Source of the DNA: Malacoraja senta
Lineage: Eukaryota
DNA length: 64,000 bases
Direction: 5' to 3'
Assembly (NCBI GenBank): GCA_038087875.1
Contig: JAXLNO010002317.1
Span: forward strand, 2,294,001-2,358,000
In this document: positions 11,600-56,425 of the stretch, piece by piece
Position numbering within the stretch: the stretch's first letter is position 1
Layout of the letters: every line of letters begins with the position of its first letter
Program-made: the position numbers and the translations under genes
The notes under the pieces: model-generated
Databases searched by the model: none
What the model saw: only the letters and a program-made list of their open reading frames with translations
Told to the model about the DNA's origin: nothing

Positions 11600-12830
11600 A
11601 GCATGATAGCGCAGCGATAGAGTTGCTGCCTCACAGTGCCAGAGACCCGGGTTTGATCCTGACTACTGGTGCTTGTCTGTACGGAGTTTGTACATTCTCT
11701 CCGTGACCGGCGTGGCTTTCTCCGGGATCTCCAGTTTCCACCCACACTCTATATGGTGTCATTATAAATCGTCCCAAGCGTGTGTTGGGTAGCGTTAGTG
11801 TGCGGGGTGATTGATAGTCAGCGTGGACTCGGGGGGTCGAAGGGCTGTTTCCGTGCTGGATCTCTAAACTAAACACAGAACTAGTGTGTGAATGGGTGAT
11901 TGATAGTCAATGCGGACTCGGTGGGCCAAAGGGCCTGTTTCCACGCTGTATCGCCAAACTAAACATAGAACTAGTGTGTGAACGGGTGATCGATGGTCAG
12001 CATGGATTCAGTGAGCCTGTTTCCACGCTGTATCTCTGCACTAAACATAGAACTAGTGTGTGATTGGGTGATGGTTGGTCGGCATGGACTCGGTGGGCCG
12101 AAGGGCCTATTTTCGCGCTGTATCTCTTAACTGAACTGAACTAAACTATATGTTGTTATTGTACTTGCCTCAACTACTTCCACCGGCAGCTTGTTCCACA
12201 ACCCCTCATCAACCTCTGTATAAATAGCCTCTTACTTCAACTTTAGTAAAGATCAGCTTAGAGCCCTAGGCTGTTCCTCAGATACCTTCCCTAATTCTTG
12301 TACCAGGCACCTTGTGGGACGTAACCACATGGCAGAACAGTAGCTGTTGATGTCAATTTAGTTTAGTTTTACAGTTTAGAGATACAGCACGGCAACAGGC
12401 TCTTCGGCCCATCGAGTCCGCTCCGACAATCGATCACCCTTTCACAAACTAGTTCTGTGTTTAGTTTAGAGATACAGCACGGCAACAGGCCCATCATCCC
12501 ACCGAGTCCATGCCGACCAGCAATCACCCGTTCACAAACTAGTTCTGTGTTTAGTTTAGTGACACAGCGTGGAAACAGGCCCTTCGGCCCACACTGACCA
12601 GTGACCAACGCTGTCCTACACACACTTCGGACAAATTAAAACGTTTTTACAGAAGTCTAATTAACCTACAAACCTGTACGTCTTTGGAACGTGGAAGGAA
12701 CCGGAGATCCCAGAAAAAATCCATGCAGATCACAGGGAGAACGTACAAACTCCGTACAGACAGCACTTGTAGTCAGGATCGAAGTCGGGTCTCTGGCGCT
12801 GTGAGGCAGCAACTCTGCCGCTGCGCCACT
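11600..12830. repeat. Tail-to-tail SINE + tandem 3'-tail arrays forming an inverted repeat (11600-12145 +, 12360-12830 -)
   Basis: ~85 bp unit (AACTAGTGTGTGAACGGGTGATCGATGGTC...CTGTATCTCTAAACTAAA) repeated 4-5 times on + and 3 times on -. Confidence 0.7.
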
Positions 12831-13099
12831 GCACCATCATGTTACTTGGCAATGATTAGCGCGAAGTCTAACGATTGGGAAGCTTTTAAAAAACAAAATA
12901 AGGCAACTAGATTGGTCAAAAGGTCATAAGTGATAGTAGAATTAGGGCATTTGGCCTATCAAATCTACTCCACCATTTAAGCATGGCTGATCTATCACTC
13001 CCTCTTAACCCCATTCTCCTGCCTTCTCCCTATAACCCCTGACACCCGTACTAATTCATAATCTTTCTATCTCTGCCTTAACAATATCCACTGACTTAA

Positions 13100-13750
13100 C
13101 CACCAGGTGGCGCCAGCAATGGCTGCCTCGCCAACAGTCTGTCTGTCCCTTCCTTTTTTGTTGTCCGTTTGTGTGTTTTAAATGTATGTTTTTAGTGGTT
13201 TTTAGCTTGTTTTATGTGGGGAGTGGGGGGAACCTTTTCCTCATCACTTATCTCATGTGCGATTTTCTTCCGTATCATATCTCCGTCCGCACGGTGGTCC
13301 AACATCGAGGAGTTGGTGGCCTTTGCTGGAGACCGACTTCGAGAGCTGCACCCCGGGTGCCTGCATGACTTCCCATCACGGAGCTTGCGATCTCTGTCAG
13401 GGGTCGATTTTGGGGCTCCAACCGTGGGTGCCTGCGAACTTTAACATCACCGAACTTGTGGTCTCTGGTTAGAGACCGACTTCGGGAAACTGCAAGCCGC
13501 AGGAGTTTTGATTGCCCTGACGAGGGGTCTTCGACCGCCGGCTGCGGGAGCTTCAATCCCCCAGACTGCGGATGGTTCGATTGCCCCGACCGCAGGAGAA
13601 TAAAATACGTTATTGCCTTTTATCACAGTGAGGATCGTGGTGTGGTGGATGTTTGTTAACTTTTATGTAGTTATGTCTCATGTTGCTTTTTTTGGTAATT
13701 CGAATTTCACTGTACCTTAAATGGTACATGTGATAATAAACTGACCTTGA
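13100..13750 (+). mobile_element. Short non-autonomous retroelement with Rex-Babar-like 3' tail, inserted in a CR1 tail; starts with a CTCF-like motif
   Basis: CCACCAGGTGGCGCCA at 13100-13115; ends TTTCACTGTACC...GGTACATGTGATAATAAACTGA like the tail at 44960-45000; CR1 sequence resumes on both sides. Confidence 0.55.
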
Positions 13751-14264: not shown

Positions 14265-14304
14265 ATGATCGGGAGATCGTTCTTCCTCCTCTCCCTTCTC
14301 CAAG
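14265..14304 (+). CDS. Siglec-like gene: signal peptide exon (exon 14223-14304)
   Basis: AAAATG start after in-frame upstream TGA; MIGRSFFLLSLLQ; acceptor TTTCTCTTCCAG|; donor CAAG|GTACCA in phase 1 joins V exon to give ...LLQAVMS-GQW. Confidence 0.8.
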
Positions 14305-15164: not shown

Positions 15165-15627
15165 TTTTTTTAATCAAAAATAATTTATTCAATTACGATT
15201 ACGATACAAAAACCAAAACAACAACAAAAACGTGGTGACACACCCTCCACCATATTACAAAATCACCAAATTATTCAGACACTAAATTTCCAAACAACTA
15301 TGGCTACAAATATACTAATAAACCACTATATAACCATGTCCCTCTCTAACACCACCCGGGCGCGGACGTAACCCTGGTAATGATGCAACCAACTGGCTCG
15401 GGCAAAGCCCTCTTCTGCCTGGCGCCGTGACTTGCAGATGGCCAGCTTGGCCAGGCCTAGGAGCAACCCAACCAGGCCATCTTCGGCCCTGCCCACTCCC
15501 TAGATCCTGTCACGAGTCCTTCAGTCGCTGACAGCAGAGTCACTCCTCCCCTACGGACCCTAGGTGGAGTGGCGATGCTCCTTGCCCTCTGGACCCTGGC
15601 TACAAGGGACGCTCTACTGGTCCCTGG
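15165..15627 (-). mobile_element. Tx1/L1-clade LINE 3' fragment
   Basis: Poly-T at ~15165 then sequence homologous to the 3' end of the element at 51180-51560. Confidence 0.75.
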
Positions 15628-16256
15628 GAGTGACGCACTGTGGGAGGGGCAGTGAGGAGGGAGTGACACACTGTGGGAGGGGCAGTAGTGGGGAGTGATG
15701 CACTGGGAGGGGCGGTGAGGAGGGAGTGACGCACTGGGAGGAGTAGTGAGGAGGGAGTGACACACTGTGGGAGGGGCGGTGAGGAGGGAGGGACGCACTG
15801 GGAGGAGTAGTGAGGAGGGAGTGATGCACTGGGAGGGGCGGTGAGGAGGGAGTGACGCACTGTGGGAGGGGCGGTGAGGAATGAGTGACACACTGGGAGG
15901 GGCGGTGAGGAGGGAGTGACGCACTGGGAGGGGCGGTGAGGAGGGAGTGACACACTGGGAGGGGCGGTGAGGAGGGAGTGACGCACTGTGGGAGGAGTAG
16001 TGAGGAGGGAGTGACGCACTGTGGGCGGGGCGGTGAGGAGGGAATGACACTGGGAAGGGCGGTGAGGGAGTGACACACTGGGAGGGGCGGTGAGGAGGGA
16101 GTGACACACTGGGAAGGGCGGTGAGGGAGTGACACACTGGGAGGGGCGGTGAGGAGGGAGTGACATACTGTGGGGGGGCGGTGAGGAGGGAGTAACGCAC
16201 TGGGAGGGACGGTGAGGAGGGAGTGACACACTGTGGGAGGGGCGGTGAGGAGGGAG
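15628..16256 (+). repeat. G-rich minisatellite, ~19 units of 30-35 bp
   Basis: Unit CACTG(TG)GGAGGGGCGGTGAGGAGGGAGTGAC(G/A); merges at its 3' end into a minus-strand SINE head (CTCTACCGCTACACCACCATGCCGC). Confidence 0.9.
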
Positions 16257-16394: not shown

Positions 16395-16763
16395 CCGTGA
16401 TGTCGGGACAGTGGAGAGCGGACATTCCACGAGATGTGACAGCGCAGAATGGTTTGTGTGCACGGATTCCGTGTCACTACTGGTACCCGTCGCATCTGAA
16501 CAATGAATCACGGATTGGAATCTGGTTTAACAGTGGGACGCAGAACAACAAAGGTTCTGTAGCCTTCCACTCCAGGAAATCCAATCGAGAATCAACAAAG
16601 TTTCAGCATCGGACCCGGCTGTCAGGTGTCCTGAGAGACAACGACTGTTCCCTGGTTATAGACAACATCAAGCAGCAAGATGCAGGTCCTTATTATTTCA
16701 GAGTTCATTTTGGAGTGGGCGATCGTAACAGCTACCCCAATGTAACATGGCTCAGTGTTACTG
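16395..16763 (+). CDS. Siglec-like gene: N-terminal V-set Ig domain (sialic acid binding)
   Basis: 369 nt phase 1-1 exon; W near start, GLCARIPC, DCSLVI, DAGPYYFRV with essential Arg (AGA 16700-16702), NSY aromatic; CTCAG| and |GTAAGT. Confidence 0.93.
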
Positions 16764-17816: not shown

Positions 17817-18110
17817 ATTTCACAGATAAACCCACGATATTCCCTGCTGAAATGGTGGCAGGTCAGCCTGTGAACGTGACCTGCTCCTTCAACACCACGT
17901 GTGATGGAACGGCCCCCACCTTAACCTGGGTCACCCCCGCTGATGAACCACCATCAGCCTCACAAAGCGTAACACAGCGGGGAGACACTCTGACATATAC
18001 TTCTGTTCTGTCCCTGACCCCAGCGCTCAATCATCACGGGCAAAACCTCACCTGCAGAGTCACATACCCAACTGTCTCATCAGAGCAGATCCTCACAATG
18101 ACTGTGCAAT
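17817..18110 (+). CDS. Siglec-like gene: Ig domain 2 (C2-set) with inter-domain Cys
   Basis: 294 nt phase 1-1 exon; VTCSFNTTCDGTAPTLTW...HGQNLTCRV; TTAG| and |GTAAGT. Confidence 0.92.
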
Positions 18111-19165
18111 GTAAGTACGGAGATGGTTTATTGTGCAGGAACAGCAATAATCTATTAGCAGTGCTGGTACATAAGGTCATAGGCGATATGAGCAGAATTA
18201 GGCCATTCGGCCCATCATGTCTAATCTGCCATTCAAGCGTGGCTGATCTATCTCTCCTAACCCCTTCTGCCTTCTCCCCATAACCTCTGACATCCATACT
18301 AATCAAATCAACATCAAAAGCTGGAGTAACTCAGTGGGACAGGCAGCATCTCTGGAGAGAAGGAATGGGTGACGTTTCGGGTCAAGAGCGTTCTTCAGAG
18401 TGAAAGTCACGGGAAAGGGAAACGAGAGATATAGACGATGATGGAGGGAGATGTAGGACCTACCTGATCTCCCGGTTGCTAAACACTTGAATTATCCTTC
18501 CCATTCCCAAACTGACTTTTCTAGGACTCGTCCACTGTCAGAGGGAGGCTAAACCAAATTGGAGGATCAGCATCTCATATATTCGGCCGTTTACAGCCCA
18601 GTGGTATGAATATTGATTTTTCTAACTTCAGGTAGACCCGGCATTCCCTCTCTCTCCATCCCTCCTCCACCCAAGTCGCACCAGCTTCTTGTTCTCACCC
18701 AACAAACAGCTAACAATGACCTGTTTCCTTTATCATCGATAATTTTTTGCGTATCTTTCATTCTTTGTTCTATATCTCTCTACACCATTGGCTGTATCTC
18801 TCATTTCCTTAAAAATAGAAGTCGTTGCGGACTCGGTGGGCCAAAGGGTCTGTTTCCACACTGTATCTCTAAACTAACGTGTGAACGGGTGATCGATGGT
18901 CAGCGCAGACTGGGTGGGCCAAAGGGCCTGTTTCCACTCTGCATCTCTAAAGTCTAAACACTAAAGTCTTTTACAATCCAAGGGTCACGGAAGTGCCGCA
19001 AAACTGGTTGCTGAGTTTTATCTGTTTGCAGATGCCCCCCAGAATCTCTCAATGACTTCCCCCAACAACGTGAACAATTTCTGGGTCAGTATAAAGGAAG
19101 GAAACTCTGCAGCGATCCTCTGCTCCGTCCAGAGTTTCCCAACATCTAACCTGACGTGGAGACAT

Positions 19166-22053
19166 AGATACATAGATACATAGAAAATAGGTGCAGGAGT
19201 AGGGCATTCGGCCCTTCGAGCCTGCACCGCAATTCAATATGATCATGGCTGATCATCCAACTCAGTATCCCGTACCTGCCTTCTCTCCATACCCCCTGAT
19301 CCCTTTAGCCACAAGGGCCACATCTAACTCCCTCTTAAATATAGCCAATGAACTGGCTTCAACTACCCTCTGTGGCAGAGAGTTCCAGAGATTCACCACT
19401 CTCTGTGTGAAAAGGTTTTTTCTCATCTCGGTCTTAAAGTATTTCCCCCTTATCCTTAAGCTGTGACCCCTTGTCCTGGACTTCCCCAACATCGGGAACA
19501 ATCTTCCTGCATCTAGCCTGTCCAACCCCATAAGAATTTGTACGTTTCAATAAGATCCCCTCTCAATCTCCTAAATTCTAGCGAGTATAATAATAATATA
19601 ATAATAATAAGTTTATTTATATAGCACATTTTCCAATTGATTTAAATCAAAAGCCAAAGTGCTTTACAGTTACTAACCAAACAAATAATAAAAAGAGATA
19701 GAAAAAATGACAACACACTATAAGAGATTTTACACAACCACGAAGTCTATCCAGTATTTCTTCATATGAAAGTCCTGACATCCCAGAATTCAGTCTGGTG
19801 AACATTTTCTGCACTCCCTCTATGGCTATAATGTCCTTCCTCAGATTTGGAGACCAAAACTGTACGCAATACTCTAGGCGTGGTCTCACCAAGACCCTGT
19901 ACAACTGCAGTAGAACCTCCCTGCTCCTATACTCAAATCCTTTTGCTATGAAAGCTAACATACCATTTGCTTTCTTCACTGCCTGCTGCACATGCATGCC
20001 TACTTTCAATGGCTGGTGTACCATGACACCCAGGTCTCGCTGCATCTCCCCTTTTCCTAATCGGCCACCATTTAGATAATAGTCTGCTTTCCTGTTTTTG
20101 CCACCAAAGTGGATAACCTCACATTTATCCACATTATACTGCATCTGCCAAACATTTCCCCACTCACCCAGCCTATCCAAGTCACCTTGCAGTCTCCTAG
20201 CATCCTCCTCACAGCTAACACTGCCCCCCAGCTTAGTGTCATCCGCAAACTTGGAGATGTTGCCTTCAATTCCCTCATCCAGTTCATTAATATATATTGT
20301 AAATAGCTGGGGTCCCAGCACTGAGGCTTGCGGTACCCCACAGGAGCCTTGCTTCCTGTTTGCCAGCCAGTTCTCTATCCACATCAATACTGAACCCCCA
20401 ATACCGTGTGCTTTAAGTTTGTTTACTAATCTCTTATGTGGGACCTTGTCGAAAGCCTTCTGAAAGTCCAGATACAACACATCCACTGGTTCTCCCCTAT
20501 CCACTCTACTTGTTACATCCTCGAAAAATTCTATAAGATGCGTCAGACATGATTTACCTTTCGTAAATCCATGCTGACTTTGTCCAATGATTTCACCACT
20601 TTCCAAATGTGCTGCTATCCCATCTTTAATAACTGACTCTAGCAGTTTCCCCACTACCGATGTTAGACTAACTGGTCTGTAATTCCCCATTTTCTCTCTC
20701 CCTCCCTTCTTAAAAAGTAGGGTTACGTTTGCTACCCTCCAATCCTCAGGAACTACTCCAGAATCTAAAGAGTTTTGAAAAATTATCACTAATGCATCCA
20801 CTATTTCTGGAGCTACTTCCTTAAGTACTCTGGGATGCAGCCTATCTGGCCCTGGTGATTTATCGGCCTTTAATCCATTCAATTTACCCAATGCCACTTC
20901 CCGACTAACCTGGATTTCACTCAGTTCCTCCATCTCCTTTGACCCGCAGTTCCCTGCTATTTCCGGCAGATTATGTCTTCCTTAGTGAAGACGGAACCAA
21001 AGTAGTTATTCAATTGGTCCGCCATATCCTTGTTCCCCATGATCAATTCACCTGTTTCTGACTGCAAGGAACCTACATTTGTTTTAACTAATCTCTTTCT
21101 CTTCACATATCTATAAAAACTTTTGCAGTCAGTTTTTATGTTCCCTGCCAGTTTTCTTTCATAATCTATTTTCCCTTTCCTAATTAAGCCCTTTGTCCTC
21201 CTCTGCTGGTCTCTGAATTTCTCCCAGTGGTATGCTGCTTTTACTGGCTAATTTGTATGCATCATCTTTTGCTTTGATACTATCCCTGATTTCCCTTGTT
21301 ATCCACGGATGCACTACCTTCCCTGATTTATTCTTTTGCCAAACTGGGATGAACAATTTTTGTAGTTCATCCATGCAGTCTTTAAATGCCTTCCGTTGCA
21401 TATCCACCGTCAACTCTTTTAGAACTAATTGCCAGTCAATCTTGGCCAATTCACGTCTCATACCCTCAAAGTTACCTTTCTTTAAGTTCAGAACCGTTGT
21501 TTCTGAATTAACAATGTCTCACTCCATCCTAATGAAGAACTCAACCATATTATGGTCGCTCTTGCCCAAGGGGGCACGCACAACAAGACTGCTAACTAAC
21601 CCTTCCTCATTACTCAATACCCAGTCTAGAATAGCCTGCTCTCTCGTTGGTTCCTCTACATGTTGGTTTAGATAACTATCCCGCATACATTCCAAGAAAT
21701 CCTCTTCCTCAGCACCCCTGCCAATTTGATTCACCCAATCTATATGTAGATTGAAGTCACCCATTATAACTGTTTTGCCTTTGTTGCACGCATTTCTAAT
21801 TTCCTGTTTGATGCCATCCCCAACTTCACTACTACTGCTAGGTGGCCTGTACACAACACCCACCAACGTTTTCTGCCCCTTAGTGTTTCGCAGCTCTACC
21901 CATACCGATTCCACATCCTCCAAGCTAATGTCCTTCCTTTCCACTGCGTTAATCTCCTCACTAACCAGCAACGCTACCCCACCTCCTTTTCCTTTCTCTC
22001 TATCCCTCCTGAATATTGAATATCCCTGGATGTTACATCCCTGGATGTTACAT
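19166..22053 (-). mobile_element. 5'-truncated CR1 LINE (ORF2 APE + RT, frameshifted) inside exon A
   Basis: ORFs 21519..22088 (GDFNLHIDW endonuclease) and 19647..20933 (YLDFQKAFDKV, FADDTKL); tail ATCTATGT repeats; ACAT duplicated at 19162-19165 and 22050-22053. Confidence 0.93.
19590..19742 (-). mobile_element. L2-like 3' tail fragment nested in the CR1
   Basis: TAATAATAAGTTTATTTATATAGCAC...GTGCTTTACA resembles the L2 tail at 46610-46670; absent from the sister CR1 at 55720-55745. Confidence 0.6.
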
Positions 22054-24905
22054 CTCGGTATCACGCTGAACACAACACGTTCCAGCAACGAGCTGTGGAT
22101 GGTGTTCCCTCAGCTGACACGGCAGGATGCCGGGGTCTATCAGTGTGTGGCGGAGAATGAACACGGGACAGCAGAGAGGGATGTGACCCTCACTGTAGAA
22201 TGTGAGTAGACACACACTGAGACATCTCTATAAACGCAGATGGATTATTGGCCCATGAGAGATGCTGGAATTCACTACACACACTCACTCACACCTACAC
22301 ACAGTCTCCCTCTCTCACACGCACACACACACACTCTCTTACACGCACTCACTCAAACACACACACACATCAAGATCTCGGAGAAAACCCACGCAGGTCA
22401 TGGGGAGAACGTGCAAACTCCATACAGACAGGCACCGGTGGTCATGATCGAACCTGGGTCTCTAGCGCTGTAAGGCAGCAGCTCTACCCACTGCGCCACC
22501 GTGCAGCCCACATCTACAATCTTTTGTGTTCCCCACCTGTATGTAGCCCGTCTGACCTCTGCCTGACATTGTTGGATCATATTGGTCTTTCTACCCAGAA
22601 ACCCTCAATGCGTCTCAATGCTTCAAGGGAATAATGTTTAGTGCAAGAAAAAGCCAGTAAAGTCCTATCAAAGATAGCACCATAGTAATTCAGGACTGTG
22701 CTCTGGTTGTGGTGGGATGGTTCAGTTGCCTGATAACAGCTGGAAAGAAACTGTCCCTGAATCTGGAGGTGTGCGTTTTCACACTGCTGTACCTCTTGCT
22801 CGATGGGAGAGGGGAGAAGAGGGAGTGGCTGGGGAGCGACTCGTCCTTGATTTTGCTGCTGGCCTTGCCAAGGCAGCGTGAGGTGTAGATAGAGTCAACC
22901 AGCCAACATGCCCCATCTGTACTAATCCCACATGCCTGCGTTTGGCCTATATCCCTCATACCTATCCTATCCATGTACCTGTTCAACTATTTCTTAAATG
23001 CTGGGATAGTCCCAGCCTCAACTACCTCCTCCGGCAGCTTGTTCCATACACCCACCACCCTTTGTGTGGAAAAATGTTACCCCTCAGGTTCCATTAAATC
23101 TTTTCCCCTCTCCTCTTAAACATAAGTCCTCTGGTCCTCGAATCCCCTACTCTGGGCAAGAGACTTTGTGCATCTACCCGATCAATTGCTCCCAATAATT
23201 TTGCACACATCTATAAGATCACCCCTCATACGCCTGCCCTCCAAGAAATAGAGTCCCAGCCTGCCCCAATATCTCCCCGTAGCTCCTGCCTTCAATCCTG
23301 GAGAACAAGGGTAGGTGACAAAGGTCTTTTATTTACTGTTGCCCTCTTGAGTTTCATTGCCTGTATAACTTGTCATGACCTACCCCAGAGCCAACAATGG
23401 ACCATTGTGGGCTCAATGTTTTTCATGATCATCATTGCTTTTGCATATCTTTCATTCATTTGTGCCGTCGATATATCTCGTATCCCGCTCTCCGACTCTC
23501 AGTCTGAAGAAGGGTCTCGACGTGAAACGCCACCTATTATTTTTTTCCGGAGATGCTGCCTGACCCGCTGCGTTACTCCTACACTTTGTACCTGTCCGTG
23601 TTCTCCAGAGATGCTGCCTGACCCGTTGAGTTACTCCAGCACTTTGTGTCTGTCATGAATGTTTATATAGTATCTTGTTTCAATGAGAAGATAATATAGG
23701 ATCGCCTTTAGACTTCAAACAGGTAGTTCATGTTTACAAGATATAGGAATAGAATTAGGCCATTCGGCCCATCGAGTCTACTCCGCCATTCAATCATGGC
23801 TCTTTCTCCTAATCCCATTTTCCTGCCTTCTCCCCATAACCCTTGACACTTGTTCTAATCAAGAACTTGTTTATCTCTGCCTTAAAAATATCCAATGACT
23901 TGACTCCACAGCCCTTTGTGGCAATGAGTTCCACAGATTAACTACCCTCTGACTAAATAAGTTCCTTCTCACCTCCTTTCTATAAGAGCGCCATTTAATT
24001 CTGACGCTATGAGCTCTGGTGCTAGACTCTCCCACCAGTTGAAACAACCTTTCCACATCCACATGCCTTTCATTATTCTGTAAGTTTCAATGAGGTCCCC
24101 CATCCAACCTTCTAAATTCCAGTGAGTGGAGGCCCAGTGCTGTCAAGCGCTCATCATACGCTATCCCACTCATTCCTGGAATCATTCTTGTAAACCTCCT
24201 CTGGACCCTCTCCAGAGCCAGCACATCCTTCATCAGATATGGGGCCCAAATTTGCTCACAATATTCCAAATGCAGCCTGACCAGCGCCTTATGGGGCCTC
24301 AGCATTACATCTCTGTTTTTGTATTCCAGACCTCTTGATATAAATGCTAGCATTGGATTTGCCTTCCTTACTACCGATTCAACTTGCAAATTAACTTTTT
24401 GTGAGTCCTGCACCAGTACTCCCGAGTCCCTTTGCACCTCTGATTTCTGCATTCTCTCTCCATTTAGAAAATACTCTACGCCTTTACTCTTATTACCAAA
24501 ATGCATGACTCCATTCTTTGCAATACTGAATTTCATCTGCTACTTCTCTACCCACTCTCATAACCTGTCCAAAGTACTTCTGCAGAGTCCTTGCTTTCTC
24601 TATGCTATCTACCTCAGCATCATCTGCAAACTTGAGCACACAGTCTTCAATCCCCTTATCCAAATCATTAATATACAACATGAAGAGAAGTGGCCCCAGC
24701 ACCGACCCTTGAGGAACTCCACTGGACACTGGCAGCCAACATGAAAAAGCTCCTTTTATTGCAACTCTTTGCCTTCTGCCATCCAGCCAACCCGCTATCC
24801 ATGCTAGTATCTTCCCTTTAATACCATGGCCTCTCATCTTTCCCAGCAGCCTGACATACGGCACCTTATCGAGGGCCTTCTGAAAATCTAGGGAAAGAAA
24901 CATAG

Positions 24906-27517: not shown

Positions 27518-27799
27518 ATGCTCCACGGAATCTCTCAATCACTTCCCACGACGACGCGAACAGTTCCCGGGTCAGTGTAAAGGAAGGAAACTCTGCAGCG
27601 ATCCTCTGCTCCGTCCAGAGTTTCCCAACATCTAACCTGACGTGGAGACATCTCGGTGTCACGCTGAACACAACACGTTCCAGCAACGAGCTGTGGATGG
27701 AGTTCCCTCAGCTGACACGGCAGGATGCCGGGGTCTATCAGTGTGTGGCGGAGAATGAACACGGGACAGCAGAGAGGGATGTGACCCTCACTGTAGAAT
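27518..27799 (+). CDS. Siglec-like gene: C2/I-set exon B
   Basis: 282 nt phase 1-1 exon; AILCSVQSFPTSNLTW...QDAGVYQCVAENEHG; TTTAG| and |GTGAGT. Confidence 0.9.
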
Positions 27800-30927: not shown

Positions 30928-31209
30928 ACGCTCCCCAGAATCTCTCAATCACTTCCCCCAACAACGTGAACAATTCCTGGGTCAGTCTAAAGGAAGGAAA
31001 CTCTGCAGCGATCCTCTGCTCCGTCCAGAGTTTCCCAGCGTCTAACCTGACGTGGAGACATCTTGGTATCACGCTGAACACAACACGTTCCAGCAACGAG
31101 CTGTGGATGGAGTTCCCTCAGCTGACACGGCAGGAAGCCGGGGTCTATCAGTGTGTGGCGGAGAATGAACACGGGACAGCAGAGAGGGATGTGACCCTCA
31201 CTGTAGAAT
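30928..31209 (+). CDS. Siglec-like gene: C2/I-set exon A'
   Basis: 282 nt intact phase 1-1 exon; TTTGCAG| and |GTGAGT; QEAGVYQC. Confidence 0.9.
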
Positions 31210-31541
31210 GTGAGTAGACACACACTGACACATCTCTATAAACGCAGATGGATTATTCTCTATAGAGGCAGATGACAAGTGCATATCCTCTCTTATTCAT
31301 TCTCACCTAGCAAAGAGCTACCAATTACCTGTTTCCTTTCTCATCATTACATTTTTGCCTATCTTTAATTCATTTGTTCTATATCTCTCTACGCCATTGT
31401 CTATATCTCTCATTTTCCTTACCCGTGACATTCAATCTGAAGAAAGGTCTCAACCCAAAACGTCACCCATTCCTTCTCTCCAGAGATGTTGCCTGTCCCG
31501 CTATGTTGCTCCAGCATTTTGTGTCTATCTTCTGTTTAAAC

Positions 31542-31670
31542 NNNNNNNNNNNNNNNNNNNNNNNNNNNNNNNNNNNNNNNNNNNNNNNNNNNNNNNNNNN
31601 NNNNNNNNNNNNNNNNNNNNNNNNNNNNNNNNNNNNNNNNNNNNNNNNNNNNNNNNNNNNNNNNNNNNNN
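31542..31670. other. Assembly gap (129 N)
   Basis: Run of N in the sequence. Confidence 1.
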
Positions 31671-40315: not shown

Positions 40316-40597
40316 ATGCTCCACAGAATCTCTCAATCACTTTCCACGACGACGCGAACAGTTCCCGGGTCAGTATAAAGGAAGGAAACTCTGCGGCGAT
40401 CCTCTGCTCCATCCAGAGTTTCCCAACATCTAACCTGACGTGGAGACATCTCGGTTTCACGCTGAACACAACACGTTCCACCAACGAGCTGTGGATGGAG
40501 TTCCCTCAGCTGACACGGCAGGAAGCCGGGGTCTATCAGTGTGTGGCGGAGAATGAACACGGGACAGCAGAGAGGGATGTGACCCTCACTGTAGAAT
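40316..40597 (+). CDS. Siglec-like gene: C2/I-set exon B'
   Basis: 282 nt intact phase 1-1 exon; 8 nt differences from exon B. Confidence 0.9.
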
Positions 40598-42189
40598 GTG
40601 AGTAGACACACACTGACACATCCCTCAAAACACCATAAGGTCATAAGTGATAGGAGCAGAATTAGATTGCCGAATGACCAAGTCTACTCCGCCATTCAAT
40701 CATGGCTGATCTATCTCTCCCTCCTAACCCCATTCTCCTGCCTTCTCATTGAGCCATAGAGTTATAGAGCCATAAAGTCATAGTGATAGAGAGTCGTAGA
40801 GTGATACAGTGTGGAAACAAGCCCTTCGGCTCAACTTACTTTCAACAGCCTACATGTCTCAGGTATATTAGTCCCACCTGCCCACATTTGGCCCATATCC
40901 CTCCAAACCTGTCCTATCCATGTACCTGTCTGTTTCTTAAACACTGGGTAGACCCTGCCTCAACTACCTCCTCTGGCAGCTCGTTTCATACACCAACTAC
41001 CCTTTGTATGAAAACGCCACCACCTATATACCTATTAAATGTTTTCCCCTTTACCTTAAACCTATGTCCTCTGGTCCTCGATTCACTTACTCTGGGCAAG
41101 GGACTCTGTGCGTCTACCCGATCTATTCCTCTCATGATTTTATACACCTCTATAAGATCACCCCTCATCCTCCTGCGCTGCAAGGAATAGAGTCCCAGCC
41201 TGCTCAACCTCTCCCTATTGCTCAGGGCCTCAATTTCTGGCTACATCCTCGTAAATCTTCTCTGTACCCTTTCCTGCTTGACAACATCTTTCCTATATTT
41301 CCTCTCTCCTCTTCTAAGATGAGGAAGATTAGATCAAGTTATTTGAAGCATTGTGTGCAGTTCTGGTCACCCCATTACAGGAAGGATGTGGCCAGGGTGC
41401 AGAATGCTGCCTGGATTAGAGAGTATTAGCAATAAGGAGTTTTAAGGAGGGCTCAGTGGTTCAACGGTAGAGTTGCTGCCTCACAGCACCAGAGAGCCGG
41501 GTTCGATCATGACTACTGGTGCTTGTCTGTCGGGAGTTTGTAAGTTCACCTCATGACCTGTGTGGGTTTTCTCCAGATGCTCCGGTTTCCTCCCACACTC
41601 AAATCGGACAGGTTTGTAGGTTAATTGACTTGGTATATTTGTAAATTGTCCCTAGTGTGTGTGGGATAGTGTAAGTGTGCGGGGATCGTTGGTCGGCGCG
41701 GACATGGTGGGCCGAAGGGCATATTTACTTGCTTTATCTCTAAACTAAACTAAACTAAAGAGGTTGGAAAGATTTGTATTGTTTTCTATGGAGTTCATAA
41801 GGTCATAAGTAAAAGGAGCAGAATTAGGCCATTCGGCCCATCATGTCTACTCCGCCATTCAATCATGGCTGATCTATCTCTCCCTCCTAACCCCATTCTC
41901 CTATCTTCCCATAACCCTTGACACCCGTACTAATCAATAATCTATCTATCTCTGCCTTAAATATATCCACTGACTTGGTCTCTGCCGCCGTCTGTGGCAA
42001 TGAATTCCACAGATTCACCACCCAGTTCAAAGGCTGAGGGGAGACCTGATAGAAATATATAAAACTATGAGATGCATAGAGAAGGTAGACAGTCAGAATC
42101 TTTTTCCCATGGTGCAAATGTCAAAGTTGAGAGGGCAGAGCTTTAAGGTGAGAGGGGAAAACCGTAAAGGTGATGTGTGGGGCAAGTTT

Positions 42190-43291: not shown

Positions 43292-43585
43292 ATGCGCCAG
43301 AGATTTCCTGGGATTCGGGATGCACTCGCACACCTGAGAGTGTCACCTGTGTGTGTGCGGCCAGGTGCAACCCACCCGGAGAGCTCACCTGGCGCCTCCC
43401 CCTCGCCAACCTCAGCGGAAACCAAACCCGCGGACGTCCCCACACATGGCAGGTGGCCGGCGGGCATCTGGTGAATGGCTCCTTCACCCTGAGAGGGGGT
43501 GATGGAGGGGAAGACGTGACGGCCTTGTGCTCAGTCCGAAACCGACACGGGGAAGCCTTGTTCACGGTGTATCTGTCGATGGAAG
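43292..43585 (+). CDS. Siglec-like gene: membrane-proximal MAG-domain-5-like Ig domain
   Basis: 294 nt phase 1-1 exon; YAPEISWDSGC...VTCVCAARCNPPGELTW...LTLRG...ALCSVRNRHG has the C-x8-CxC-x4-NP pattern of MAG D5; TCTCCAG| and |GTGAGG. Confidence 0.88.
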
Positions 43586-45039
43586 GTGAGGACATCTCTG
43601 GGGGAGGGAAGTCATCGAGCCATAGTCATGGTCATAGTGTGTAGGAAAGAACTGCAGATGCCTCGGTTTAAATCGAAGATAGACACAAAATGCTGGAGTA
43701 ACTCAGTGGGAAAGGCAGCATCTCTGGAGAGAAGGAATGGGTGATGTTTTGGGTCGGTCTGAAGAAGGGTCTCGTCCTGAAACATAACCCATTCCATCTC
43801 TCCAGGGATGCTGCCTGTCCCTGCTGAGTTACTCCAGCAGTTGGTGTCTGACATAGTCATAGTCAGAATCATTCAGCGTGGAAACAGGCCCTTCGGCCCA
43901 ATTTGCCCACACCAGCCAACGTGCCCCATCTACACTAGTCCCACCTGCCTGCACTTGGTCCATATCCCTCCAAATCTGACCTATCCATGTACCTGTCTAA
44001 CTGCTTCATAAATGTTGGAATAGTCCCTGCCTCAACTACCTCGTCTGGCAGCATGTTCCATACACCCATGTGTGAAAAGGTTACCCCTCAGATTCCTATT
44101 AAATCTTTTCCCCCTCACCTTAAACCTATATCCTCTGCTGTCCGATTCTGTGCATCTACCCGATCTAATCCTCTCATGACTTTATACACCTCTATAAGAC
44201 CACGTTACAGTTTAGTTATTGTCATGTGTACCGAGGTACAGTGAAAAGCATTTGTTGCATGCTAACCAGTCAGCGGAAAGACTATACATGATTACAATCG
44301 AGCCATTTACAGTGTTTAGGTACATGATATGGGAATAATGTTTAATGCAAGGTAAAGCCAGCAATGTTCGGTCATGGGTAGTCCGAGGGTCACCAATGAG
44401 GTCGATAGTTCAGCACTGCTCTCTGGTTGTGGTAGGATGGTTCAAGGTGTATCTGTGGTTAGTTTAGTTTAGTTCAGTTTAATGTCACGTGTACCAAGGT
44501 ACAGTGAAAAGCTTTTGTCGCATGCTAACCGCAAGAAATTGCAGAAAGTTGTGGACGCAGCCCAGACCATCACATAAACCAACCTCCCTACCATCGACTC
44601 CATCTGTACCTCACACTGCCTCGGCAAGGCCAGCAGCATAATCAAGGACCAGTCTCACCCCGGCCACTCCGTCTTCTCCCCTCTCCCATCGGGCAAAAGG
44701 TACAGAAGTGTGAAAATGCACACCTCCAGATTCAGGGAGTTACTTTCCAGCTGTTATCAGGCAACTGAAGCATCCTACTACAACTGGAGAGCAGTCCTGA
44801 ACTACTATCTACCTCATTGGAGACCCTCGGACTACTTTGATTGGACTTTGCTGGCTTTAACTTGCACTAAATGTTATTCCCTTATCATGTATCTGTACAC
44901 TGGACGGCTCGATTGTAATCATGTATTGCCTTTCTGCTGACTGGATAGCATGCAACAAAAGCTTTTCACTGTACCTCGGTACACGTGACAATAAACTAAA
45001 CTTTAAAAACTGAAAACACACCTCTGGTTGTTCTTACAG

Positions 45040-45136
45040 GTAAGAGCTTCAGTATTTGGATCGTAGTTTTGCTTACAGCAGGGATAATACTGATCGCTGA
45101 GCTTGCTGGATTCTTCATCTACAAGTATATACAGCG
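45040..45136 (+). CDS. Siglec-like gene: transmembrane exon
   Basis: GKSFSIWIVVLLTAGIILIAELAGFFIYKYIQR; TTCTTACAG| and CG|GTAAGT (phase 1 in, phase 2 out). Confidence 0.88.
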
Positions 45137-47890: not shown

Positions 47891-47972
47891 GAGGGAAGAT
47901 GTGACAACGGAGAAGGCTTCAGGAAACCAAGATACAAATGTGATCTACTGCCCACACTCTGCCACCAATCAG
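47891..47972 (+). CDS. Siglec-like gene: first cytoplasmic exon
   Basis: Unique island; CTCCAG| acceptor; phase 2 in, phase 0 out; (R)REDVTTEKASGNQDTNVIYCPHSATNQ; donor CAG|GTAGTG is fairly weak. Confidence 0.7.
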
Positions 47973-48832: not shown

Positions 48833-49023
48833 AGCGCGGGGAGTGGAGAGGACGGGCCGGCCCCAGAGGAGCTGAAAGGAGGAGGGGAACCGGAGAGGGG
48901 GAAGAGCGAGCGGTCGTGTACGCCAGCCTGCGGGAGTTGCCGAGCAGCGGAGACACTGTGCACAACGGCGAGGGGGTGGAATACGCTGAGCTCTGGTTCC
49001 AGTCCAAGCAGGGGGAGGGGTAG
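48833..49023 (+). CDS. Siglec-like gene: terminal cytoplasmic exon with two ITIMs (VVYASL, VEYAEL); frame conflict at G5 run 48897-48901
   Basis: TACTAAAC branch-like motif, CTTTCCTTCCAG| acceptor; Tyr codons 48919-48921 and 48982-48984; stop TAG 49021-49023. Confidence 0.75.
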
Positions 49024-52000
49024 GAGGGAGGGGCGTGAGGAGGGAGGGCCGTGCTGTGGCAGGGGTGATGGGGAGGGAGGGGCGATGGGGAGGGAGCGCT
49101 GCACCAGCCTTAACTACCTTGGGTTTCATAGATTAATTAACCCTCTGTATAGGAGATAGTGGGATAGCATAGAACTAATGTGTGAACGAATGATCGATGG
49201 TCGGTGGGCTGAAGGGCCTGTTTCCACACTGTATCTCTAAACTAAACATAGAACTAATTTAAGAGATTTAAGATAGTTAGATAGAGCTCTAGGGGCTAAT
49301 GGATTCAAGGGATATGGGAAGAAGGAAGGCACGGGTTATTGATTGTGGACGATCAGCCATGATCACAATGAATGGCGGTGCTGGCTCGAAGGGCCGAATG
49401 GCCTCCTCCTTCACCTATTTTCTATGTAACTATTGTGCGAACGGATGATCGATGGTCGGTGCAGACATGGTGGGCCGAAGGGCCTGTTTCCGTGCTGTAT
49501 CTCTTAAAAAAGCCTTTGTTTCTTTAGAACAGACTGTTCCGGGTAACTATTGACATTGACAATAATTGCTTCTATTGACACTGGTCAAATGATAGTCTGT
49601 TAAACATACAGTCTTTACCTGCAGTTACAAAATAGACTTGTAGCTATTAAATGAAGACCTTTAGTTTTTGAAAATCCGGTGGGATTTTTGCTAATGCTCT
49701 TGTGAAACTCTGAAGCCCCCTCTTGCTCTTGTAGCGCCATGTTCTATAACAAGTTTCATAGCAAGCAGCTCTCTGTGCGGCATTGGTGAGTAATAATAAT
49801 AATGAAATACAGACGCTGGAAATCTGACAAAGGGCAGCACGGTGGCACAGTGGTAGAGTTGCTGCCTCACATGCGCCAGAGACCCGGGTTTGATCCTGAC
49901 CATGGGTGCTGTCTGTGCGGAGTTTGTACGTTCTCCGCGTGGATTTTCTCCGGGATCTTCGGTTTCCCCCCACACTCCAAAGACAGGCAGGTTTGTAGGT
50001 TAATTGGCTTGGTGTAAATGTAAATGGTCCCTGGTGTGTGTAGTGTGCGGGGATCACTGGTCGGTGCTGACTCAGTGGGCCGAAGGTCCTGTTTCAGCAC
50101 TGTGTCTCTAAACTACACTAAACTAAAACTAATCAGTCATGGTCATCCAATAGTGGAGCAGGTGTAAGATTAATCCTGATACTATTTTTATATCATTACA
50201 TGTTTTCTGCAGAGGATTTGGATTTGTTGCATTTGTAAACAAAGAGATTAAAATGCTAAACCATCACATGTCTCAGAATTATGTTTTAAACATCTCTTTT
50301 ATTTGATTTTTGGTCTGCTAATTTGAGGAAGGACATTCTTGCTATTGAGGGAGTGCAGCGTAGGTTCACCAGATTAATGCCCGGGATGGCGGGACTGACA
50401 TATGATGAAAGAATGGATCAACTGGGCTTGTATTCACTGGAATTTAGAAGGATGAGAGGATATCTTATAAAACATATAAAATCCTTAAGGGATTGGACAG
50501 GCTAGATGTAGGAAAAAAGTTCCCGATGTTGGGGGGAGTCCAGAACCAGGGGTCACAGTTAGGTCATTTGGGACTGAGATGGGGAAAATCATTTTCACCC
50601 AGGGAGATGTGAATCTGGGAATTCTCTGCCACAGAAGGCAGTGGGGGCCAATTCACTGGATGTTTTCAAGAGATAGATTTAGCTCTTTGGGCTAACGGAA
50701 TTAAGGGATATGGGGAGAAAGCAGGAATGGGATACTGATTTTGGATGATCAGCCGTGATCATATTGAATGGCGGTGCTGGCTGGAAGGGCAGAATGGCCT
50801 ACTCCTGCACCTATTTTCTATGTTTCCGCGCTGTATCTCAACTAAACTAAAGCCTTCCTATTACATTCCCATCTGAATATCTTGTAAAAGTCACGATTGT
50901 GTCCTTTCTAGAGCTTTTTTTAAAATTTCAAAATATACTTTATTTGAGAAATAAATATATCCAATACATGATCCTTACAAGACTCCATCCAACAATCTCG
51001 GAGGCTATACATACATTCAATAATGTTTACACAAATTACACAAATTTATCCCCCATCCTTGCCACTCATGTGGCCCACTGGCGTGGAATCCCTTCCCTTA
51101 TTTTTGAGGGGCATCTCCACCACACCCTGCCCCCCATGTCCAGCAGCGGAAGGACCCTAGGCTGTGGTCCCCATCGTCTTTTTTTAAATTATCAAAAAAT
51201 TTAATCAATTATTAAAAATAATATTTACAATACAATGAAACAAAACAGAACCCACCACCATAATACAAGACCAACAAATATACTAAATAAACTACTGTAC
51301 ACCTATGTTACACTCCTTGTCAAGGATGCATTCAACCCACCGCGGTGCCCAGTGGTCCTGGAAATCTCCCAGGGTGCCCGTGGACAGGGCGTACTCCCTC
51401 TCTAACACCACCCGGGCAAGGACGTAACCCCTGAAAAGGGGCAGGCATCTGGCTCGGGCAGAGCCCTCTTCCGCCTGGCACCGTGACTCGCGGATGGCCA
51501 GCTTGGCCAGGCCCAGGAGCAACCCAACCAGGACATCTTCAGCCCTACCCTCTCCCTTACGCACAGGGTGTCCAAAGATGAAGATGGTGGGTGAGAAATG
51601 CAGCCAGAAGGCAAGGAGCAGCCCCTTTAGATATTGGAACAGACTGCAGCCTCACACACTCCATATAAACATGGTACACAGATTCTTCCTGCCCGCAAAA
51701 GTGGCAGGCGGCTGGCGAGTCTGTGAACCGCGAGAGAAACAGGTTGCAGGGGACTCCTCGGTGCAATACCCTCCACCCCAGCTCCCCGATGTAGAGGGGG
51801 AGAATCCCTGTGTAGAGGGACCCCCCCCCCCCACCCCCACCGAGCCTTGGCGTTTGCTGCACCAAGCTTCAGTGCATCCCTCAGCATGTACTCCTGCAGT
51901 CTGCAGCAGGCCAGTCGGCAACATTCCCCAACGGACATCTCACTCCGCTGGGAGGTCAACAAAGCTCGGGCAGCCCAAAGAGCGTCTTTCACCGCCTTTC

Positions 52001-53395: not shown

Positions 53396-55307
53396 TCAGT
53401 GTAGAGCAGTTGGATCCAATTCCTGATTCCCTCCCCAAAGCCCATTTTGGAGAGCACGTCCCTCATGTACGTGTGCGATATCCTGTTGAAGGGCTTCTCC
53501 TGGTCCTAACTGACTAGGCAGGCATCCACCTGTCTGTCCTGCACATAGGCAATGGTATCTGTCAGCAGCGTCAGGCTGTCTGAGATATTTCTGCAAGATA
53601 CAGGAACAGGTGGATCACCCGTCCCAGAGCAGACTTGACCCGGTTGGCGATGGCCTTGGACAGGATCTTGTAATCAACATTCAACAATGTGATAGGTCTC
53701 CAATTCCTTATGTCATTCATCTCCCCCTTCTGCTTGTAGATTAGGGTGATGCTGCCCTTCCTCATAGAGTCTGACATGCTGCCGGCTAGAAGCATGTCAT
53801 TGTACACTTCCAGCAGGTCCGGGCCCACCCAGTCCCACTGAGCCGAATACAACTCGGCCGGTAAGCCATCGCTTCTGGGAGTTTTACTCAACTCAAAGGA
53901 ATGGATGGAGCCAGTCAGCTCCTCTAGGGTCAGTGGTTGGTCCAGACTCTCCCGCTTGCTGTTCTCCAAGACCTCCGTGGTAGAGGACAGGAAGTTCTGG
54001 GAGGCGGTGCTGTCTGTGGCCTTTCTGTCGTACAAATCCGTATAAAAGGATGTGCAGATCCTCAGCATGTCCGTCTGCAAGGATGTTACCGAGCCGTCCT
54101 CCTCCCTAAGGCTGTTGGTCACAGAGCTCCCCCTGTGAACCTTATGGAAGAAGAAGCGTGAGCACGTCTCATCCTGCTCCACGTGGCGGACCCTGGATCG
54201 GAAGATGGTCTTGGAGGATATGGAGGTAAAGAGCCGAGTTTGCCGGCCCTTCAACTCTCAAAGTTCCTCCCTCACATCCACCCCTCTCGACTGCAGAAGG
54301 AGCAGAAGTTGCTACAAATCTGTCTGGAGTTGACACAATTCCCTCTGACTCTGTCTTGCTCTCTGAACCCCTTTAGATATGAAGAACCTCTTGATGTTCT
54401 CATTGGTTGATTCCCACCAGTGTGTCGGGGAGTCAAAGAGGGGCCTCACCGATCTCCAACATGCGTAGTCCCTCTTTAACTCCTCAATGTTCTCTGGGGT
54501 CAACAGCTTCACATTGAACTTCCACGTCCCCCTGCCTGCCTTCCGGTCCTCCTGTAGGTGACAGGAAGCCTGAAGGAGGCAGTGGTCAGAGAAGAACACC
54601 GGCGTGAGGTCGGTGTGTCTCACCGTGACGGCCTTCGATGTGAAGAGGAAGTCTATCCGGGACCGGGCTGAACCGTCCGATCTCGACCAGGTGAACCGCG
54701 ACTGGGACCCGCCTGCAGGGTGGCTGAAGGCGTCGCGCAACTTTGCGTCTTTGACCGTCTCCATCAGGAGCTTGGAGGTGCTGTCCAGTCTGTGATCGGC
54801 ACTGCCCGATCGTCCAGCCGCATCGATGATGCAGTTGAAGTCACCGGTCAGAACGAGCGACCGGGACGTGGCCAGCAGTGGTGGGAGCTGCTGGAGAACG
54901 GCCAGCCGCTCGCTCTGCACGGGTGAGGCGTACACATTAATCAGCCGGAGCGGAGAGCCACGTTACATTACATCCACCACCAGGTGACGGCCCCTTCCCC
55001 CCAACCACCTCCCTGACCTCAGTGATGGCGAAGCTCCCTCCCGCAGCAAGATCCCCAGACCGGAAGCGCGACAGTCATTGCCCCCCGACCACACCGACAG
55101 TCCGTGGGGCCACCATCGCGACCACCTCTGATAGCCGTGGAGGTGTGGCAGCCCGCACTCCTGCAGAATAGTCACATCTGCCTCGACCTTGGGCAGGTAC
55201 TGCAAGGTGTTTACACATCGCGCAGTGTTCTTCACACTGCGCACGTTTAGCGATGCCAGTTTTAGCTCCATTGTCCTTAAAAAGTCACTGATCGTCATCT
55301 TGTCCTA

Positions 55308-56425
55308 GATACATAGATACATAGAAAATAGGTGCAGGAGTAGGCCATTCGGCCCTTCGAGCCTGCACCGCCATTCAATATGATCATGGCTGATCATCCA
55401 ACTCAGTATCCCGTACCTGCCTTCTCTCCATACCCCCTGATCCCTTTAGCCACAAGGGCCACATCTAACTCCCTCTTAAATATAGCCAATGAACTGGCGT
55501 CAACTACCCTCTGTGGCAGAGAGTTCCAGAGATTCACCACTCTCTGTGTGAAAAAGTTTTTCCTCATCTCGGTCTTAAAGGATTTCCCCCTTATCCTTAA
55601 GCTGTGACCCCTTGTCCTGGACTTCCCCAACATCGGGAACAATCTTCCTGCATCTAGCCTGTCCAACCCCATAAGAATTTTGTACGTTTCTATAAGATCC
55701 CCTCTCAATCTCCTAAATTCTAGCGAGTATAAGCCAAGTCTATCCAGTCTTTCTTCATATGAAAGTCCTGACATCCCAGGAATCAGTCTGGTGAACCTTC
55801 TCTGCACTCCCTCTATGGCTATAATGTCCTTCCTCAGATTTGGAGACCAAAACTGTACGCAATACTCCAGGTGTGGTCTCACCAAGACCCTGTACAACTG
55901 CAGTAGAACCTCCCTGCTCCTATACTCAAATCCTCTTGCTATGAAGGCCAACATACCATTCGCTTTCTTCACTGCCTGCTGCACCTGCATGCCTACTTTC
56001 AATGACTGGTGTACCATGACACCCAGGTCTCGCTGCACCTCCCCATTTCCTAATCGGCCACCATTTAGATAATAGTCTGCCTTCCCGTTTTTGCCACCAA
56101 AGTGGATAACCTCACATTTATCCACATTATACTGCATCTGCCAAACATTTGCCCACTCACCCAGCCTATCCAAGTCACCTTGCAGTCTCCTAGCATCCTC
56201 CTCACAGCTAACACTGCCCCCCAGCTTAGTGTCATCCGCAAACTTGGAGATGTTGCTTTCAATTCCCTCGTCCAGATCATTAATATAAATTGTAAATAGC
56301 TGGGGTCCCAGCACTGAGCCTTGCGGTACCCCACTAGTCACTGCCTGCCATTGTGAAAAGGACCCGTTTACTCCTACTCTTTGCTTCCTGTTTGCCAGCC
56401 AGTTCTCTATCCACATCAATACTCT
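55308..56425 (-). mobile_element. 5'-truncated CR1 LINE nested between Tx1 ORF1 and ORF2
   Basis: Uninterrupted ORF 55403..56428 (RT C-terminal half); same tail and subfamily as the CR1 at 19166. Confidence 0.92.

Follow-up and report, generated by a model that had tools for sequence, protein, structure and literature searches.

We analysed a 64,000-bp stretch of the genome of the skate Malacoraja senta (assembly GCA_038087875.1, contig JAXLNO010002317.1, positions 2,294,001 to 2,358,000 of the forward strand), which is referred to as the window and numbered from its first base. Its plus strand carries one CD22/Siglec-10-like gene, traced by comparison with the proteins P0020 of Mobula and P0208 of Amblyraja radiata, whose layout is V-set domain, C2-set domain, four I-set repeats designated A, B, A′ and B′, membrane-proximal Ig domain, TM (transmembrane) segment and cytoplasmic tail. 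The first of these four repeats, exon A, is broken by a 2,884-bp insert at 19166–22049, which lies antisense to the gene and has the hallmarks of a 5′-truncated CR1-type LINE (long interspersed nuclear element). An initial annotation of this DNA had described a coding Ig exon interrupted by such an element, and the two exon halves, the junctions and the minus-strand EN (endonuclease) and RT (reverse transcriptase) regions all bear this description out. Its figure of 2.9 kb can be refined to 2,884 bp, or 2,888 bp if one ACAT is counted in. The coordinates of the features are collected in Table 1.

The anatomy of the split exon can be read directly. The acceptor of exon A is intact (ctgtttgcag/AT), and the left half, reading APQNLSMTSPNNVNNFWVSIKEGNSAAILCSVQSFPTSNLTWRH, ends in ...GACGTGGAGACAT / ...GGAGACAT at 19165, where it gives way to AGATACATAGATACATAGAAAATAGG...; the exon restarts with CTCGGT at 22054 and stops at 22201 in front of an equally intact donor. 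The 134 and 148 bp of the halves add up to 282 bp, exactly the length of the intact paralogues B, A′ and B′, to which the halves are 90–98% identical, and all four I-set repeat exons (A being rejoined) are of phase 1-1 with intact splice sites. At the break, six intact copies, i.e. the three window paralogues and three exons of the A. radiata P0208 locus (L002, assembly GCA_010909765.2), have a single ACAT in the context GGAGACATCTCGGT. As all six empty sites carry one ACAT, the filled site differs from them only by the element and a further ACAT, and zero target bases were lost. The sister exon A′, which had been proposed as the intact empty site, indeed reads GGAGACATCTCGGT with its single ACAT. 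The A. radiata locus is collinear with the window over 11–52 kb at 86–91% identity and presents the empty site at L002 15077–15080, where window 19165 corresponds to L002 15080 and window 22050 to L002 15077, giving a 4-bp overlap with the CR1 absent. An empty site plus an element, at most a short duplication, and an element tail adjoining the left junction together form the arrangement expected of TPRT (target-primed reverse transcription).

Table 1. Features of the Siglec-type gene and of the CR1 insert in the window
Feature	Position	Strand	Evidence or remark
Exon 1, signal peptide (MIGRSFFLLSLLQ), donor AAG/gtacca	14265–14304	+	tblastn with Mobula P0020 and sequence reading
V-set exon, YYFRV arginine motif	16395–16763	+	Pfam V-set 1.4e-11, Ig_CD22 1.7e-7
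C2, first C2-set exon, phase-1 end (GTG CAA T/gtaagt)	17817–18110	+	Pfam C2-set_2 3e-10
Two tandem ~12-kb units (A+B, A′+B′)	18872–42067	+	self-megablast, 90–95% identity outside unit-specific repeats
Exon A, left half, 134 bp, intact acceptor	19032–19165	+	sequence reading
ACAT copy 1: target, or last ATGT of CR1 tail octamer on other strand	19162–19165	+	
CR1 3′ end: octamer tail TTTCTATG TATCTATG TATCT, preceded by hairpin GGUGCAGG...CCUGCACC	19166–19245	-	
Nested ~150-bp insertion ending in (ATT)n-type run	19593–19742	-	absent from three sister CR1 copies
CR1 ORF2 reverse-transcriptase segment, 428-aa open stretch	19650–20933	-	RVT_1 1.8e-29
CR1 AP-endonuclease, C-terminal half; 5′ truncation inside domain	21522–22023	-	Exo_endo_phos_2 1.6e-12, profile positions 3–116
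Open frame through antisense CR1, continuous with right half	21751–22209	+	ORF reading
5′ junction: (CCCTGGATGTT = first 11 nt of truncated CR1) + ACAT, twice	22024–22053	+	
Exon A, right half, 148 bp, intact donor GAAT/gtgagt	22054–22201	+	sequence reading
Exon B, intact I-set, phase 1-1	27518–27799	+	Pfam I-set 2.8e-13
Exon A′, intact sister of A, empty site, 96.8% over coding part	30928–31209	+	
Exon B′, intact	40316–40597	+	
Membrane-proximal Ig exon	43292–43630	+	92% to A. radiata P0208
TM exon (IILIAELAG)	45040–45136	+	comparison with A. radiata
Cytoplasmic exon	47891–47972	+	comparison with A. radiata
Last exon, with 1-bp deletion at ~48891 versus A. radiata	48833–49159	+	

On the minus strand the insert presents the C-terminal half of an AP-endonuclease, a linker, the RT and a C-terminal segment, so that EN precedes RT on one strand as in CR1-type LINEs; the Exo_endo_phos profile is matched at positions 65–225 only. 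The hairpin near its 3′ end, an 8-bp stem (GGUGCAGG/CCUGCACC) with an inner stem, has a minimum free energy of -27.7 kcal/mol (z -4.2, with 0/200 shuffles as good) and is combined with a short microsatellite without poly(A), as is typical of the CR1 3′ end. The same octamer tail is found on more than ten copies in the window. In birds, the CR1 3′ signature is a hairpin plus an 8-nt microsatellite, ATTCTRTG (PMC8665684). The insert thus resembles amniote CR1 (chicken repeat 1) in its ORF2 with AP-endonuclease and RT, its strong 5′ truncation, its lack of poly(A) and its hairpin followed by an 8-nt microsatellite, whereas it differs in its skate host, in octamers (TTTCTATG/TATCTATG) that are off by one or two positions from the avian one, and in a doubled unit of element end plus target at its 5′ junction, for which we make no claim of novelty, the literature being unsearched on this point. 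At the level of these hallmarks (EN, RT, hairpin and octamer tail) the designation as an antisense, 5′-truncated CR1 holds. An Atlas search with the RT segment returned generic RT clusters only and thus no information on the clade, and CR1 proper, as opposed to L2 or Rex1, is a putative placement within the CR1 group; Rfam gave zero matches in window 18000–23000. No second copy of the nested ~150-bp piece was found among the sequences compared.

The junctions themselves were then read base by base. ACAT had been reported at both junctions, and it does stand at 19162–19165 and at 22050–22053, together with a third copy, at 22035–22038, that falls within a 15-bp tandem at the truncation point. 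The tandem had been noted as well, and is present, but what it repeats is not CR1 sequence but the CR1/target junction. Written as ATCCCTGGATGTTAC it occupies 22022–22036 and 22037–22051; in junction units, each comprising 11 nt of CR1 end and 4 nt of target, it occupies 22024–22038 and 22039–22053. In the sense of the element the window reads ATGT-AACATCCAGGG-ATGT-AACATCCAGGG-ATATTC, and a longer L. erinacea (Leucoraja erinacea) copy of the same CR1 (L001 2660–2700) reads ...GGGAGCTG/AACATCCAGGGATATTC. Because the L. erinacea copy differs there, the ATGT between the two 11-mers is not CR1 sequence, and the 15-bp tandem is thus a doubled CR1/target junction, on the basis of one reference copy of 91% identity. 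Two other readings were considered and ruled out: a tandem native to the CR1 with microhomology, since the longer copy has GCTG, not ATGT, before AACATCC, and a target-site duplication longer than ACAT, since the bases preceding the two ACATs differ. On the tail side, the octamer goes on as ...TATCTATG T, which equals ACAT on the other strand, and the sister copies likewise show ATG after the tail. The ATGT beside the tail can be counted as tail or as target, so that the duplication is of 0–4 bp, a length compatible with a nicked 3′ end having primed synthesis by pairing to the repeats of the tail. The doubled junction could stem either from repeated run-off onto a 4-nt overhang or from later 15-bp slippage; in either case it is only a slightly unusual detail of the event.

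From these features we infer the following course of integration. The target would have been the first of the four tandem 282-bp I-set exons, into which the 2,884-bp CR1 was probably inserted antisense by TPRT. A nick in the plus strand after ...GGAGACAT would have freed a 3′ end that primed cDNA synthesis on the CR1 tail, an octamer repeat containing AUGU, with no loss of target and with 0–4 bp (ACAT) duplicated. Synthesis would have ended inside the endonuclease domain, and the [11 nt CR1 + ACAT] unit may have been doubled by a repeated template jump or by later slippage. The insertion followed the A/A′ duplication, and the copy has gained since then ~2% private substitutions, one stop, two frameshifts and the nested 150-bp piece. 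Inclusion of exon A would lead to a stop five codons past the break, and the 1-bp deletion of the same gene copy puts both tail motifs of ITIM (immunoreceptor tyrosine-based inhibitory motif) type out of frame.

The age of the insertion was assessed from its divergence. Compared with two sister copies (window 55307–56334 and L002 21749–22779), which have 11 and 25 private substitutions, the insert has 20 over ~1,025 bp, and it has its own stop (FFIRME followed by a stop codon) as well as its own frame-shifting gaps of 5 and 4 bp relative to the L001 copy. At synonymous sites the window gene has diverged from its A. radiata counterpart by 0.116 (dS). As ~2% private divergence stands against this value, the insertion is young relative to the window/A. 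radiata split, yet not brand new, and because A′ is empty it postdates the A/A′ duplication. Its absence at the collinear A. radiata locus points to a lineage-specific event. There is also a reciprocal case: a ~1.1-kb member of this CR1 subfamily, 96% identical to window 55306–56384, occupies L002 21749–22853, and the corresponding site of the window, 41911–41915, is empty with a 5-bp overlap, so that the subfamily was active in both lineages or loci.

The introns of the nearest loci, L002 and the L. erinacea locus L001, are both ~88–91% identical to those of the window, so that L002 could be orthologous to the window locus or closely paralogous to it. In the intron downstream of A′ (window 31215–31541) and of the L. 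erinacea exon (L001 13375–13700), ...GATGGATTATT is directly followed by a SINE-like insertion that neither exon A (window 22215–22600) nor the A. radiata A exon (L002 15260–15700) has beside it. Given this distribution, A and A′ may predate the divergence of these skates; alternatively, the loci may be paralogous.

It could also be argued that the split is not species-wide and reflects either an assembly chimera in a duplicated region or a rare null allele of the sequenced individual. The locus is indeed a 90–95% identical tandem duplication with an N run at 31542–31670, inside its second unit. However, the sequence at both junctions agrees to the base with six empty sites, no target was lost, the nick is abutted by a 3′ tail typical of LINEs, the ~2% private divergence and the nested insertion indicate that the copy is not brand new, and units differing by 5–10% are not haplotypes. 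We therefore regard this explanation as very unlikely; a polymorphic allele, which is possible, would be compatible with the explanation that we prefer below. A search of public assemblies that used the 72-aa ORF of the left half as query for an exon A in intact or allelic form gave zero candidates and says nothing either way.

The host gene has the marks of a Siglec. Its V-set exon matches the V-set and Ig_CD22 profiles and includes the conserved arginine in YYFRV, and its V domain is 60–69% identical to skate Siglec V domains. The closest proteins, from A. radiata, L. erinacea and Rhinoraja longicauda, are skate Siglecs labelled Siglec-10/-12/-13, MAG-like or CD33-like, with per-exon identities of 80–92%, and across skates, rays and sharks the closest matches go by the names Siglec-10/-12/-13, MAG-like or CD22-like. 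Like the CD22/Siglec-10-type inhibitory Siglecs, the gene has an N-terminal V-set domain with the arginine motif and a chain of C2/I-set domains, one phase-1 exon each, and, beyond the TM segment, a tail bearing ITIM-like tyrosine motifs. Unlike them, it has a Glu in the TM helix, as has A. radiata, and its ITIM motifs are out of frame; the Siglec class is assigned here from its sequence. In human CD22, a shorter isoform lacks two Ig domains. The TM-helix glutamate (IILIAELAG, window 45040–45136) occurs in A. radiata P0208 too and is thus a trait of the family rather than damage to the window copy. A tandem array of ~32-bp units at window 15626–16256, in the intron that separates the signal-peptide exon from the V exon, recurs in the corresponding position of L001 and L002 with 73–81% identity. 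Searches with the V exon, the C2 exon and full-length Mobula P0020 as queries gave only relatives of at most 92% identity, and among the 119 + 8 relatives returned for P0020 and the C2 exon (lengths of 290–460 aa uncovered) none was the window locus's own protein model, which would fit a locus left unannotated as protein-coding.

Given that read-through from the left half of exon A meets a TAG at 19181, five codons beyond the break, inclusion of the exon gives an early stop, and only transcripts that skip A, with three repeats left, could encode a receptor. The initial annotation had argued that the symmetric phase-1 exons permit an in-frame jump from C2 to B, and the phases and 282-bp lengths agree: C2 ends in phase 1 and the repeats, B, A′ and B′ alike, are of phase 1-1, so the C2 donor at 18110 and the B acceptor at 27518 join in frame (...TVQ-Y-APRNLS), the same join as in relatives. 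Skipping of exon A is accordingly plausible as a prediction from arithmetic. We scored splice sites by a crude consensus count rather than with a trained model, and by this count no cryptic donor with at least 8/9 consensus positions occurs inside the split exon, a lack that favours bypassing of the left half. In contrast, the antisense CR1 offers several candidate acceptors whose pyrimidine tracts (14–15/19) outscore that of the real acceptor (12/19), so that clean skipping is not assured. One of these, ccccttag/TG at 21884 (phase 1, 14/19 pyrimidines), would with the donor at 22201 delimit a 318-nt in-frame exon of 56 antisense-CR1 codons plus the C-terminal Ig half, and the plus strand is open over 21751–22209 in the frame of the right half. 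Such partial exonisation nevertheless appears a remote prospect, as the acceptor score is a crude count and half an Ig domain is unlikely to fold. The single AATAAA on the gene strand within the insert, at 19687 in the nested piece, is uninformative because the introns hold many.

A broader alternative is that the gene is alive, with the 3.17-kb split exon unrecognised by the splicing machinery, C2 and B spliced in frame, B, A′ and B′ serving as spacer and the insertion tolerated. The symmetric exons, the intact adjoining splice sites and the left half that has no partner donor all speak for this. Relatives do too: a C2-to-B-type junction is present in the skate relative P0264, P0266 has no I-set repeat at all, P0208 has one and P0020 four, a spread that indicates a flexible number of domains. 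Two intact B-type I-set exons of its own locus (L002 19200–19517 and 24037–24367) are also missing from the A. radiata model P0208 (Siglec-12), together with 41 C2-exon residues, which reflects either genuine alternative use or an automatic model that is incomplete. Exon skipping after an exonic retroelement insertion is documented in mouse, where Reln rl-Alb2 has an antisense IAP in exon 36 (PMC6466679), and a further report links L1 insertions to MET exon 14 skipping (PMC12934576). These cases resemble ours in that a retroelement lies in a coding exon and whole-exon skipping is one known outcome, but they are mutant or tumour alleles whose transcripts were measured, whereas the outcome in the skate is only predicted and concerns an allele in a reference genome and one of four near-identical tandem repeat exons.

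Besides the strong antisense acceptors, a further lesion counts against a living gene. The last exon matches its A. radiata counterpart at 93% identity, yet a single G is missing at ~48891 (window 48884–48898: GGGGAATCGGGAGAGG versus GGGGAACC-GGAGAGG). In the frame from the acceptor at 48833 it reads SAGSGEDGPAPEELKGGGE and then ~90 unrelated residues, and the motifs VVYASL and VEYAEL are readable only in another frame, one base off, so that the window copy has no in-frame ITIM. Even an A-skipped transcript would thus lack the inhibitory motifs and still encode ~100 out-of-frame tail residues, unless the missing base is a sequencing error, which is possible in principle; otherwise the gene has an independent second disabling lesion, as pseudogenes do. 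The initial annotation, which had called the gene rescuable, missed this lesion, and a skipped transcript would make at best an ITIM-less receptor. We consequently consider a living gene with a tolerated insertion unlikely.

Exons broken by LINEs were also encountered in related skate loci. In L. erinacea L001 (JAMYXN010000818.1), at 12331–13366, a ~750-bp sense CR1 interrupts the first I-set exon downstream of C2, the break following ...CGGCAGGA. This break is independent of the window insertion, eight exon bases (TGCCGGGG in intact copies) are unrecognisable there, and the RefSeq model P0263 reads into the CR1 (..TRQDYYLNGI). The A. radiata model P0008 (XP_032870539.1) passes from the V exon through a truncated C2 exon into sequence resembling the end of a LINE endonuclease (..GISDHNMV..), a weak match to the window CR1 (46% over 35 aa, E 0.001), and may represent a third LINE-broken Siglec exon in skates.

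Taken together, two independent lesions in one copy, the missing protein model and the LINE-broken exons in related skate loci lead us to favour, with a probability of roughly 0.55, a Siglec copy that was disabled not long ago, in a family of fast turnover, or at best a shorter ITIM-less receptor, after a fairly young, lineage-specific CR1 hit. Several observations weigh against this interpretation, and some of them would equally suit a gene that is still alive. Exon 1, V, C2, B, A′, B′, the membrane-proximal, TM and first cytoplasmic exons are all open with canonical splice sites, the rejoined halves of exon A form an uninterrupted 93-codon frame, and dN/dS is 0.43 versus A. radiata. One frameshift is present in the host coding sequence, against at least four disabling lesions in the 2.9-kb CR1 copy, an imbalance that hints weakly at constraint kept after the insertion, the numbers being small and the difference not significant. 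An assembly error might account for the 1-bp deletion, though a GGG-to-GG run is atypical for one, and loss of the ITIMs need not remove all function. Among the seven exon copies, dN/dS ranges over 0.3–2.6, with changes too few to inform.

A more specific proposal is that the gene is in use with the split exon constitutively skipped, and that the doubled junction is the footprint of a CR1 RT that ran off its RNA twice and jumped to the target. We think this quite doubtful. If the RT did run off twice, the truncation point would be the physical 5′ end of the template; if the exon is constitutively skipped, the tandem exon duplication would have buffered a hit to coding sequence, leaving a receptor down by one of its four repeats.

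With a recently disabled Siglec as the preferred interpretation, the locus finds its parallel in the Siglec pseudogenes of fast-evolving clusters, being a member of a lineage-expanded family with independent disabling lesions; the difference is that the status of the window copy is judged from two lesions only, its other exons being clean. Primate Siglec clusters offer one such comparison. Exonic retroelement insertions and exon skipping are textbook matters, as is the rapid birth and death of Siglec family members, and the event is a further instance of well-known, ordinary gene damage that opens no new question. It does provide a base-exact insertion of a CR1 into a coding exon of a cartilaginous fish, with six empty sites for comparison, and it documents CR1 integration in the skate lineage, with probable priming by tail microhomology, an intact target and a doubled 5′ junction. 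More generally, it illustrates how exon duplication adds domains to immune receptors built of repeats and how transposon hits remove them.

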